Shown here in pieces: positions 7,461 to 9,623 of a DNA stretch of 64,000 bases. The position numbers and the translations under genes are program-made. Below the pieces are notes generated by a model that was not told where the DNA came from, ran no database searches, and saw nothing but the letters and a program-made list of their open reading frames with translations. Numbering within the stretch: position 1 is the first letter of the stretch; each line of letters opens with the position of its first letter. Where the stretch lies: the sequence record NC_019406.1. One strand, 5' to 3'.

Positions 7461-7735
7461 AACCGAGGCGGGTCCACCACACCAACCGCGCGCCTCACGC
7501 TCTGCGCGCGAATTTGACCGTAACTCGAAGTGGCCGGACGCCTCAGGTGGAGGAGGCTAAGGCAATGGGCGAAGGACGGGTGCGGCGAGCGTATAATTGA
7601 GGCCGGCTGAAGTTAGCTGGGAATGTAGGTGTCCTGCCACCGTTCCCACGATGCGCGGAATCGACAGGTCCGTGTGACGCGAACGCCGGCCGAGAATAGA
7701 CGACAAGGCGTGACGCCCGGAGAGAGTGCCGGACT
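7461..7735 (+). ncRNA. putative structured ncRNA unit 1, ending in the conserved module at 7675-7732
   Basis: no credible ORF; TTGACC at 7426 with a -10-like TAGGGA 17 nt later; multiple hairpins; 3' module shared with units 2 and 3. Confidence 0.5.
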
Positions 7736-8209
7736 TCTTGACACGAAGAACTAGATCGTAGACACCTTGGGCCGACTAGGGGACCTGGGGTGGTGCGAAT
7801 GGGCTTCCACCTACAGTCATCTGGCAGCCTCTGGGACCCCAGGCTGTCAGGCTCAACGGTGATGAGATGCCAACGGCTGGCTGGAATGCCGATATCACCT
7901 GACGCGAACGCCGGCCGAGACGATACGACCAGGGCGTGACGGGGGCCAGAGGCCTCAATCCATTACTTGACCGGCGCCGGGAGTTCTGGCATCCAGGCTG
8001 TGATGTCTCAGGAGCCTCCGTTCCTGAGGGACCTATTCAGGCGATCGTGACCGTCTCAAGGGTGCTGTCCTGCGAGAAGATCGTGAGCCCGCGTATGAGA
8101 CGTCATTTACGCGCGGGACACCCATGGTGGAAGGGAGCCGCTATGTGGCCCACCTGACGCGAACGCCGGCCGAAAAGTACGATCAGGCGTGACGGGGGCC
8201 AGAGGCCCT
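7675..8209 (+). repeat. three near-identical copies of TGACGCGAACGCCGGCCGA(G/A)A...GGCGTGACG
   Basis: copies start at 7675, 7900 and 8155; the intervening sequences are unrelated and about 170-200 nt long. Confidence 0.95.
7768..7960 (+). ncRNA. putative structured ncRNA unit 2, module at 7900-7956
   Basis: TTGACA at 7738 upstream; hairpins GGCAGCCT/AGGCTGTC and GGTGAT/ATCACC; conserved 3' module. Confidence 0.5.
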
Positions 8210-8215: not shown

Positions 8216-8302
8216 GCTACGGTGGACTGAGTGGTAAGGCGTGGGACTGCAAATCCCGCTGGCGAAAGCCTATCGTGGGTTCGATTCCCACTCGTAGCTC
8301 CA
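8216..8302 (+). tRNA. tRNA-Cys(GCA) with a long variable arm
   Basis: acceptor GCTACGG/TCGTAGC, anticodon loop CTGCAAA, T-arm GTGGG-TTCGATT-CCCAC, U73, encoded CCA; extra arm GGC-GAAA-GCC; 87 nt. Confidence 0.9.
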
Positions 8303-8320
8303 AAATTCCTGACATTTTTC

Positions 8321-8360
8321 TGCCAGCCTGCTTGACAAGCCGAAAAGCGTCCGGTACACA
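8321..8360 (+). promoter_or_regulatory. sigma70-type promoter for tmRNA
   Basis: TTGACA 8332-8337, 17-nt spacer, TACACA 8355-8360. Confidence 0.65.
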
Positions 8361-8366
8361 CCTCTC

Positions 8367-8712
8367 ATCGTCGTAATACGGCATACACGATTGGCGGCAA
8401 GACAGGGGTGCGATTCCCCTCGCCTCCACCAAGACCCCACCGGCCGGTGCTTCGGCGCCGCGATCTGCCCCAGCGACAGATCGAAATCTGAACGGTGCGG
8501 TGGGGTCCTGATGGGGGCGATCAGTTTCGATTGGCGCTGTGACTGGAAGACGCGACGTAGGGTGACCTCCTGGCTTAGGCTTCGGCCGAGGTAATTGGGT
8601 CAACGCTGACAAATGTCAACGACAACGACGCTCCCGTGATGGAGCAACTGCTGGCGGCCTAACGGCCTAAAGCGGCGCCCGGCGGGGGCGTGTCAACAGA
8701 ACCCCGCCACCC
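8367..8712 (+). ncRNA. ssrA: circularly permuted (two-piece) tmRNA
   Basis: acceptor piece ends GAC-AGGGG-TGCGATT-CCCCT-CGCCTCC-A-CCA (8431); hairpin intervening segment 8432-8512; coding piece starts GGGGGCG at 8513 and gives a G3:U70 Ala acceptor stem; tag ORF 8615-8662 VNDNDAPVMEQLLAA*; CAACAGAA near the 3' end. Confidence 0.92.
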
Positions 8713-8891
8713 TGCTTCCGCAGCCGGAGGCGACGACAACTAACGGCATGATCTGTCGGCAACCGATCAACCAGTTTTCGTCTCCGGCTTCGCAAGTAGG
8801 TTTGGGGAGTAGTCCTCCGAGGGATCGGAGTATAACGCTCTCCGGGGAGGCGCCTGGGACCATCCAGCCCAGACCGTCTCCCGAATTTTAT

Positions 8892-8954
8892 GCCGGGGAT
8901 AGGGTGGTCGCTCGCCCTAAACAGTTCGGGTAAGCTCCGACTGCCCCGGCTCCA
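8892..8954 (+). ncRNA. 63-nt tRNA-like RNA with a CCA end and only two internal arms
   Basis: perfect 7-bp GCCGGGG/CCCCGGC stem, then T and CCA; internal hairpins TAGGG/CCCTA and CAG-T-TCGG/CCGA-CTG. Confidence 0.55.
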
Positions 8955-8961
8955 AGTTTGA

Positions 8962-9038
8962 TGCGGGGTGGAGCAGTCCGGTAGCTCGTTTGGCTCATAA
9001 CCAAAAGGTCGAGGGTTCAAATCCCTCCCCCGCATCCA
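8962..9038 (+). tRNA. tRNA-Met(CAT) with an fMet-like D-arm
   Basis: TGCGGGG/CCCCGCA acceptor, D-arm GAGC/GCTC, anticodon loop CTCATAA, T-arm GAGGG-TTCAAAT-CCCTC, U73, CCA; lacks the three consecutive anticodon-stem G:C pairs and the C1:A72 mismatch of initiators. Confidence 0.9.
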
Positions 9039-9039
9039 C

Positions 9040-9530
9040 AAGCTGAAGCTCCGATGGCGGTCCTAGGCCGCAGCTTTACCCGGTCCCACGTCGGACAAGG
9101 CCGGGGTCTAGGTGGTGAGATATGATCGACGCCGGCGGAGCGCCAAGCCACCTTCCGCCACCAACGCCGTGTGCGTGACAAGCCTGGAGAGAACGGGCAC
9201 TCCAATCCGGGGTATGAGGCCGGATGTAGCGAACGCCAGCGAGATCGGCGTGACTGGTGGGGGAGAGGACCCACGCTGATTTCGATGAACGCATTCGGCG
9301 ATGTCGGCTTTCTCCATGGAGCCGCCGCCTGAGGCAGGAGCTACTGCCTCCGTCATGCGTTCTGCCAAATCAGCTTCGTCGCGGGGGTTCGATTCCCCAA
9401 GTTCGCGCCTCCTAGGGCGTAGGGCTGCATGGGACACCGACGGATAAACGGGAGTTGCCGGTTCGAGTCCGGCCTGGGCGGGGACTAGGAAACCCGGCCG
9501 GTGGAGGTAACTGGAGAACCTCGTCCGACC
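9040..9530 (+). ncRNA. highly structured non-coding region with two further module copies and two orphan T-arms
   Basis: modules at 9164-9198 and 9227-9274; T-arm hairpins at 9384-9398 and 9457-9473; GAACGCAT/ATGCGTTC multi-branch stem. Confidence 0.5.
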
Positions 9531-9536
9531 TATTTT

Positions 9537-9623
9537 GGTGTGGTGGCTCGACAGGTAAGGCGCCGGCCTCATAAGCCGGAGGGCGAAAGTCCTATGTAGG
9601 TTCGAATCCTACTCACACCTCCA
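9537..9623 (+). tRNA. tRNA with CAT anticodon (Met or Ile2) and a long variable arm
   Basis: GGTGTGG/TCACACC acceptor, CCGGC-CTCATAA-GCCGG anticodon arm, AGGGC-GAAA-GTCCT extra arm, GTAGG-TTCGAAT-CCTAC T-arm, U73, CCA; 87 nt. Confidence 0.88.

Follow-up and report, generated by a model that had tools for sequence, protein, structure and literature searches.

Long variable arms on tRNAs with GCA and CAU anticodons in Caulobacter phage CcrColossus and other viruses

In the textbook view, a long variable arm is in bacteria the mark of leucine, serine, tyrosine, and selenocysteine tRNAs (Leu, Ser, Tyr, and Sec), and it is the main handle for seryl-tRNA synthetase (SerRS). Two tRNA genes of Caulobacter phage CcrColossus carry such an arm together with anticodons outside this set, namely a tRNA-Cys(GCA) at 8216..8302 and an elongator-type tRNA(CAU) at 9537..9623, both 87 nt long and on the plus strand. 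Which amino acids do these molecules deliver, and what does a phage gain from the arm? The window analyzed here is 64,000 nt long and represents bases 124001–188000 of CcrColossus (JX100810, 279,967 bp; Dolichocephalovirinae, Colossusvirus); positions refer to this window unless they are given as genome positions. In our reading, which is based on sequence comparisons and to which we give as a whole a probability of roughly 55%, the two genes encode a Cys and an elongator Met isoacceptor that would function as working phage tRNAs.

Architecture and conservation of the two tRNAs

ARAGORN and Rfam agree on both genes (RF00005, 43.0 bits for tRNA-Cys and 51.4 bits for tRNA(CAU), against a gathering score of 29), and GenBank labels them plainly as tRNA-Cys and tRNA-Met. 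The original prediction of two 87-nt tRNAs with GCA (8249–8251, plus strand) and CAU (9570–9572, plus strand) anticodons is thereby borne out. ARAGORN gives each a 7-bp acceptor stem and a 5-bp T stem (7/5), a 3-bp D stem, and an encoded CCA. The variable region comprises 16 nt in both and forms a hairpin capped by GAAA. Specifically, the sequence and the ARAGORN brackets resolve the region of tRNA-Cys (8259..8274) into CU, a 3-bp stem of GGC (8261–8263) and GCC (8268–8270) around the GAAA loop (8264–8267), and a 4-nt linker, UAUC. In tRNA(CAU) (9580..9595), the stem AGGGC/GUCCU has 4–5 bp with one G-U, the GAAA loop lies at 9585–9588, and the linker is (U)AU. The Rfam tRNA model accommodates this region as a 13-nt insertion in both molecules. 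By their variable region (10 nt or more with a stem-loop) and 3-bp D stem both tRNAs are class II in architecture; by anticodon neither is, as GCA and CAU do not belong to Leu, Ser, Tyr, or Sec.

The long GAAA-capped arms, which had also been predicted, are confirmed by the cloverleaves, the Rfam insertion, and covariation. The UAU ahead of the T stem, the U at the discriminator position (U73), and a common D-region motif, GGUAAGGCG, are likewise present in both cloverleaves. A G7:U66 pair, listed among the shared features, is seen in both CcrColossus tRNAs, but its sharing is partly coincidence, since it occurs in 6 of 7 CAU homologues and in only 1 of 7 Cys homologues.

All 7 Dolichocephalovirinae genomes compared retain the two genes together with their arms, across Colossusvirus, Shapirovirus, Poindextervirus, and two groups of Brevundimonas jumbo phages. 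The order tRNA-Cys, two-piece transfer-messenger RNA (tmRNA), initiator-like tRNA, and extra-arm tRNA(CAU) is also found in CcrPW, phiCbK, CcrRogue, CcrBL10, and the Brevundimonas jumbo phages Bambus and Kikimora, with the tRNA-Cys on the opposite strand in phiCbK, Rogue, and BL10.

Among the 7 homologues of each tRNA, standard pairs make up 98.2% of pair cells in Cys and 95.8% in CAU, and 14 and 10 pairs, respectively, have changed on both sides. None of 500 shuffles reaches the observed pairing and covariation values, and slid controls are 27–50% paired. Compensatory changes are present in every helix, including the variable arm, where both-side changes affect 2 of 3 pairs in Cys and 3 of 4 in CAU. 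For example, the Cys arm stem changes from GC to CG and from CG to UA in relatives, and the CAU stem exists as GGGC/GUCC, GGGA/UCCC, and AGGC/GCCU. U73 and GCA are present in all 7 Cys homologues; the anticodon loop CUCAUAA is invariant in all 7 CAU homologues, 6 of which have U73 and 1 has C73. On this comparative evidence the structures are not chance, and as the arm stem shares in the compensatory changes, we take the extra arm to be a selected structure.

Extra-arm tRNAs in viral and cellular sequences

Whole-genome ARAGORN analysis finds 3 more extra-arm tRNAs in the main tRNA arrays of CcrColossus: tRNA-Trp(CCA) (genome 59240–59325, 86 nt), tRNA-Lys(CUU) (genome 62019–62108, 90 nt, U73), and tRNA-Asn(GUU) (genome 69054–69142, 89 nt). 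These stand beside normal class II Leu and Ser tRNAs, and the counterparts of the extra-arm tRNAs in the host, C. vibrioides, are all ordinary class I tRNAs of 74–77 nt. The extra-arm Lys, Cys, and CAU tRNAs are found in all 5 relatives examined; among these, the extra-arm Trp and Asn tRNAs are restricted to Colossusvirus.

The architecture is also widespread in IMG/VR. A pattern scan for GCA tRNAs with a long gap and U73-CCA returns at least 119 loci; among the matches listed, 89 of 119 are extra-arm tRNA-Cys, which gives at least 89 loci and at least 73 distinct sequences of great diversity. The mean folding energy of their variable regions is −3.0 kcal/mol, vs −0.7 when shuffled, and 41 of the 73 distinct sequences among the matches listed have GNRA loops. 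A second scan, for CAU tRNAs with a purine at position 73, returns at least 118 loci, and 102 of 118 among the matches listed are true extra-arm tRNAs, with at least 88 distinct sequences. The original prediction was to fall if long-arm Cys and Met tRNAs proved common in phages and charged strictly by anticodon; the first of these now stands, given the 73 and 88 distinct sequences at least.

On viral contigs that were not chosen for Cys, the arm is found in about 4 of 27 tRNA-Cys genes. For isotypes that were not selected by pattern, the arm occurs in 23 of 185 Asn, Lys, Thr, Ile, and Met tRNAs vs 5 of 312 other class I tRNAs (odds ratio 8.7, P = 7e-7). Phage isotypes with an extra arm include Cys, Met/Ile-CAU, Ile-UAU, Asn, Lys, Thr-UGU, and Trp, all met here in viral sequence only. 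By contrast, a pattern search of 401 sampled alphaproteobacterial genomes found no true extra-arm tRNA-Cys; the 3 matches that it returned are tRNA-Cys genes of the ordinary class I type with a further TGCAAA motif upstream.

A literature search of incomplete coverage turned up no account of phage Cys, Met, Lys, or Asn tRNAs that combine an extra arm with the 7/5 fold. Gill et al. (2012) give the tRNAs without comment, and say that Rfam detected no other RNAs. Plain labels such as "tRNA-Cys" and "tRNA-Met" from annotation pipelines conceal the extra arm.

Origin of the scaffold and amino-acid identity

The original prediction also held that both tRNAs derive from one scaffold re-purposed by anticodon change. 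Class II bodies fit this view, and among CcrColossus and host tRNAs the Cys and CAU tRNAs are each other's nearest neighbors, with an identity of 73% that lies in the top 5% of class II pairs. However, host Ser and Leu tRNAs follow at 71–72%, so the margin is tiny and this part of the claim is left with partial support. Compared segment by segment, the CcrColossus extra-arm tRNAs look like class II tRNAs of the host and unlike its tRNA with the matching anticodon. tRNA(CAU) agrees with host tRNA-Ser(GGA) at 12 of 14 acceptor-stem positions and in C11:G24, and it has a Ser-like D region. In tRNA-Cys, the anticodon and variable arms are closest to host tRNA-Tyr and the D region to Ser. The arm of tRNA-Trp equals that of host tRNA-Tyr at 12 of 14 positions, and the D arm of tRNA-Asn is Leu-like. 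Overall, the nearest class II neighbors are host Tyr for Trp and Lys, host Leu for Asn, and host Ser for CAU.

Arm geometry and the host comparison suggested that tRNA-Cys descends from tRNA-Tyr, but in 15 of 18 cases a viral extra-arm Cys tRNA, compared with the Ser and Tyr tRNAs on its own contig, is closer to Ser. For this reason we propose a class II origin only, with no specific donor; most likely, as judged from these similarities, a class II scaffold (Ser, Tyr, or Leu-like) had its anticodon and discriminator reset. Canonical class II tRNAs, e.g. host tRNA-Tyr, share the 3-bp D stem and a GNRA-capped variable hairpin with the phage pair, and the Cys and CAU arm geometry (3–5 bp plus 2–4 nt) is closest to that of Tyr (3 bp plus 3 nt). 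They differ in having A73 (Tyr, Leu) or G73 (Ser), while the phage pair has U73 and the anticodons GCA and CAU. A precedent for such re-purposing is seen in the nematode nev-tRNAs, which have class II bodies with Gly and Ile anticodons (Hamashima et al. 2012; PMC3333845). They differ in being eukaryotic and Leu-type, and are described as decoding as Leu, whereas the identity marks of the phage tRNAs fit the amino acid of the anticodon.

With such a history, the arm could be a neutral inheritance from duplicated class II genes, without benefit of its own and kept because its removal would break the tRNA core. The class II nearest neighbors, by segment and over the full length, agree with this, and compensatory change proves only that the hairpin must stay folded. 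Still, we regard neutral inheritance as unlikely. The same architecture is found in many unrelated viral lineages with the non-random choice of isotypes given above, and is absent from the 401 sampled cellular genomes. Moreover, in the other 3 genera compared, tRNA-Trp is an ordinary class I gene of unrelated sequence, which implies that class I versions were available to the CcrColossus lineage.

In the reading that we prefer, the host cysteinyl- and methionyl-tRNA synthetases (CysRS and MetRS) would charge the two tRNAs according to their anticodons. For CysRS the main determinants are U73 and GCA, and for MetRS the CAU anticodon. Both enzymes belong to class I, and the variable region of a bound tRNA faces the solvent. 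The marks read by CysRS, U73 and GCA, are both present in tRNA-Cys, and tRNA(CAU) has the anticodon read by MetRS, without A73. Neither has the set that typifies SerRS substrates—i.e. an arm of 5–7 bp, 1 unpaired 3′ nucleotide, and G73. The tRNA(CAU) also lacks the marks of a bacterial initiator, as G1:C72 is paired and the anticodon stem is CCGGC/GCCGG, with no GGG/CCC. Searches for the CysRS, MetRS, class IIa synthetase core, and TilS families gave no match among CcrColossus proteins, and host enzymes must therefore charge these tRNAs.

The discriminators of viral extra-arm tRNAs follow the anticodon. Among GCA tRNAs, U73 occurs in at least 89 loci and another base in at least 2, or about 98% U73 among the matches listed. 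Of the 88 extra-arm CAU tRNAs with a purine scanned at position 73, A73 is found in 86 among the matches listed and G73 in none, the last 2 ending before this position; the complete scan adds 21 with a pyrimidine there, the CcrColossus lineage included. On viral contigs, G73 is present in 8 of 8 extra-arm Asn tRNAs and A73 in 10 of 10 extra-arm Ile tRNAs. In CcrColossus itself, tRNA-Trp has A1:U72 with G73, and tRNA-Asn has G73. From this there seems to be a large class of extra-arm phage tRNAs that have apparently retained their own amino-acid identity: the arm occurs on Cys, Met/Ile, Asn, Lys, Thr, and Trp tRNAs with their own identity marks, in hundreds of viral contigs and in no sampled cellular genome. 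If they are cognately charged, several synthetases tolerate a class II body, and phages must then gain something from it.

One detail of tRNA-Cys complicates its comparison with standard CysRS substrates. Its D loop has one extra nucleotide ahead of A14, which makes the numbering ambiguous, and the last arm nucleotide, C, could pair with G15. E. coli CysRS also reads core tertiary elements, namely the 15:48 pair and 13:22.

Several observations weigh against the two genes being working Cys and Met isoacceptors with a protective arm. U73 is not canonical for tRNA-Met; host Met and Ile2 tRNAs, and most viral extra-arm CAU tRNAs, have A73. The lysyl- and asparaginyl-tRNA synthetases belong to class II and approach the tRNA from its variable-loop side, so an arm pointing away from the enzyme cannot explain every isotype. 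The anticodon loops and the 36–41 segment of the phage Lys and Asn tRNAs have not diverged from those of the host, and no Caulobacter nuclease acting on Cys or Met tRNAs was identified. The public sequencing runs searched for this stretch reached a best share of 0.21, in a wastewater metagenome, and none contained RNA of this phage; expression and cognate charging of both tRNAs are what we infer. Finally, the bodies are Ser-like, as the acceptor stem and C11:G24 of tRNA(CAU) and the 15 of 18 contigs with Ser-nearest Cys tRNAs attest; phage tRNA-Ser with U73 exists; and a long arm with G73 or U73 has been taken as Ser identity in allo-tRNAs, which inserted Ser in E. coli (Mukai et al. 2017, Nucleic Acids Res 45:2776; PMC5389517).

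These last points form the case for mischarging or dual identity, in which host SerRS (less likely the leucyl or tyrosyl enzyme) would load Ser, so that UGY and AUG codons are partly or wholly read as Ser. The class II bodies favor it, and long-arm allo-tRNAs that have G73 or U73 insert Ser regardless of their anticodon (PMC5389517). Against it, the near-universal U73 of the extra-arm GCA tRNAs compares with roughly a quarter of the phage tRNA-Ser on the same contigs, which mostly have G73, and G73 does not occur among the extra-arm CAU tRNAs listed. The arm is also shorter than that of Ser: tRNA-Ser has 5–6 bp and a 1-nt linker in 9 of 9 host and phage cases, and the extra-arm tRNAs have 3–5 bp followed by 2–4 unpaired nucleotides. 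In addition, discriminators suit the anticodon in Asn, Ile, Trp, and Gln as well, and the genes persist throughout a phage subfamily with normal use of Cys and Met codons in its proteins. Because discriminators follow the anticodon and the arm geometry is not that of Ser, charging according to the anticodon is favored; the earlier suggestion that SerRS or LeuRS might charge the tRNAs against their anticodon is probably wrong, and we see mischarging as having slightly poorer prospects than neutral inheritance. A programmed, virus-wide missense recoding, with SerRS acting besides or instead of CysRS and MetRS so that some UGY and AUG codons would deliberately be read as Ser, is more doubtful again. 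If mischarging did occur, it would represent natural missense recoding by viruses.

The allo-tRNAs resemble the phage pair in being bacterial or phage-associated, with a long arm, anticodons other than those of Ser, Leu, or Tyr, and frequent G73 or U73 (PMC5389517). Their own features are an 8/4 or 9/3 fold, a tRNA-Sec-like D arm, and Ser identity (PMC5389517), whereas the CcrColossus Cys and CAU tRNAs are 7/5, with class II D arms of Ser or Tyr type and discriminators that track the anticodon. An 8/4 or 9/3 fold was considered for the pair and rejected, since ARAGORN gives both a 7/5 fold and an eighth acceptor pair would require U8 and C65, which cannot pair. The selC* tRNA-Cys is similar in its long arm, U73, GCA (or UCA) anticodon, and charging by CysRS, and its cysteinylation implies that CysRS can accept a long-arm tRNA (PMC5389517). 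It differs in its modified 8/4 tRNA-Sec-like fold, its occurrence in anaerobic bacteria, and its adjacent selenocysteine genes with SelB-type recoding, none of which is seen here. Separately, tRNA-Ser and tRNA-His with 8/4 folds are reported from tRNA clusters of alphaproteobacterial phages (PMC5389517). The tRNA-Ser(CGA) of CcrPW (L006, 5672–5760), which ARAGORN folds with an 8-bp acceptor and a 4-bp T stem, matches this 8/4 tRNA-Ser.

Alternatively, tRNA(CAU) could be a tRNA-Ile2, in which host TilS makes lysidine from C34 and AUA is read as Ile, rather than AUG as Met. CcrColossus has no other AUA decoder, and an Ile2-like acceptor stem (GGGCCNG) is common among viral extra-arm CAU tRNAs. 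However, the tRNA has G4:C69 and U5:A68 in place of the C4:G69 and C5:G68 of the host Ile2-type tRNA, and these pairs covary freely among its homologues; position 73 is U or C, not A; no TilS gene was found among the phage proteins; and the phage would be left with an initiator-like CAU tRNA and no elongator Met. We therefore hold an Ile2 identity to be very improbable for this gene. As for the viral extra-arm CAU tRNAs in IMG/VR, they are of several types, many with the Ile2-like stem and A73 and others initiator-like (UGCGGGG...), and extra-arm tRNA-Ile(UAU) is frequent. Given that the Ile2-like and UAU forms are so frequent, AUA decoders seem especially prone to carry the arm.

The least probable alternative is a nontranslational role, with little or no use on the ribosome, in which the RNAs would be regulators or would occupy tRNA-binding nucleases or toxins of the host as decoys or by competitive inhibition: competitive inhibition by overexpressed viral tRNAs has been raised for the nuclease AriB (PMC12409363), some allo-tRNAs are charged yet unused in translation (PMC5389517), and the genes lie within a noncoding RNA island beside a tmRNA gene, but the 7/5 arrangement, T loop, U33, purine-37, encoded CCA, and anticodon-matching discriminator are all intact and conserved.

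Possible benefit of the arm and the surrounding RNA island

If the two genes are Cys and elongator Met isoacceptors, the proposed sequence of events would be as follows. A class II (Ser, Tyr, or Leu-like) tRNA would have been the donor, with its 3-bp D stem and a hairpin arm of 3–5 bp plus 2–4 unpaired nucleotides kept and its anticodon and discriminator reset to the new amino acid. Host CysRS, reading U73 and GCA, and host MetRS, reading CAU, would charge the products and tolerate the arm, as it is directed away from these class I enzymes, and UGY and AUG would then be read normally. Because of the arm, host factors that grip the tRNA body, and chiefly defense nucleases that cleave tRNAs, would act poorly on the phage copy, and phage translation could be kept going when the host Cys and Met tRNAs are attacked. 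Taken alone, this shielding role, which the original prediction had offered as an alternative, is a tentative suggestion that fits the context; it is our leading guess for the benefit of the arm, and we would not bet on it at even odds.

The context consists first of RNA-repair genes located 3–6 kb downstream of the tRNA island, all on the minus strand: an RNA ligase (PF09414, 12393–13601), a gp30.3 homologue (PF08010, 13887–14348), and an RlaP nucleotidyltransferase of RNA repair pathways (PF10127, 14958–15854). Together with the tmRNA between the tRNAs and the overlap of arm-enriched isotypes with AriB targets, these suggest a setting of conflict over tRNAs. AriB, the nuclease of the PARIS defense system, targets Lys(UUU), Thr(UGU), and Asn(GUU) tRNAs, and in a structural model it grips the D loop and positions 40/41 of the anticodon stem (PMC12409363). 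The arm-enriched isotypes include Lys, Thr(UGU), and Asn, and the Lys and Asn tRNAs of the Caulobacter phages combine a class II D loop with an arm emerging beside the cleaved strand. By analogy, a steric or shape-based escape from an AriB-like nuclease is conceivable. Phage T5 variants that escape AriB offer a parallel, in that phage isoacceptors replace host tRNAs destroyed by the nuclease (PMC11464382, PMC12409363), and the targets of AriB (Lys, Thr-UGU, Asn) are among the isotypes that most often carry the extra arm. They differ in relying on point substitutions at positions 16, 39, and 41 of class I tRNAs, whereas the change here is architectural and we infer the link to a nuclease. Owing to the target overlap, immune escape through tRNA structure can be tested directly in the tractable model pair of phiCbK and Caulobacter.

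Short frames ahead of the tRNA arrays (genome 68112–68243 and 61174–61383) consist largely of the amino acids of the downstream tRNAs, e.g. ...YRNNVRQIRVRQFN... and ...HKPSTLKP...SLAHASLL.... Their sequence fits leader-peptide attenuators, and their Asn and Lys codons match the downstream extra-arm Asn and Lys tRNAs, which we count in favor of these being working tRNAs. A similar leader upstream of the Cys/CAU island was rejected, as there is no short Cys- or Met-rich frame there. Also outside the window, a 97-nt "tRNA-Arg(ACG)" (genome 69159–69255) has a poor fold and looks degenerate.

Within the island, a two-piece (permuted) tmRNA of alphaproteobacterial type lies between the two tRNAs (8369..8662, plus strand). 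It is unannotated in JX100810 and is matched by Rfam RF04321 (83.8 bits) and RF01849 (53.5 bits) over 8328–8711. ARAGORN calls homologues only in CcrPW and phiCbK, and their tag peptides end in LAA or IAA (VNDNDAPVMEQRLAA in CcrPW). The initiator-like tRNA(CAU) (8962..9038, plus strand) is 77 nt long with a short variable loop, as given by ARAGORN and Rfam (68.3 bits). It has a paired U1:A72, U73, and a weakened G:C run in the anticodon stem; the host initiator has a C1×A72 mismatch and C73, and the phiCbK-type homologues have C1×U72 and C73.

Upstream of tRNA-Cys, 3 tandem copies of an element starting with TGACGCGAACGCCGGCCGA are found on the plus strand at 7675–7708, 7900–7954, and 8155–8207, 225 and 255 nt apart. 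The last 2 copies run into an identical 22-mer, and the third ends 9 nt ahead of tRNA-Cys. Promoter, processing signal, and small-RNA module are all candidate functions of the element. Between the two CAU tRNAs, 2 T-arm-like hairpins, GGGGGUUCGAUUCCCC and GCCGGUUCGAGUCCGGC, at 9380–9470 on the plus strand may be tRNA remnants. Just upstream of them lies the annotated open reading frame gp163 (9108–9317, minus strand), which may be spurious. A Y-RNA was considered for 9380–9470 and rejected, given a YrlA score of 23 bits vs a gathering score of 69, a fold z-score of 0.06, and a Ro60 gene located elsewhere. This Ro60 (TROVE) homologue is encoded outside the window, on the minus strand at genome 107.4–108.9 kb, and the sub-threshold tRNA-like matches beside it (genome 108895–108949 and 109217–109284) probably mark a Y-RNA-like locus.

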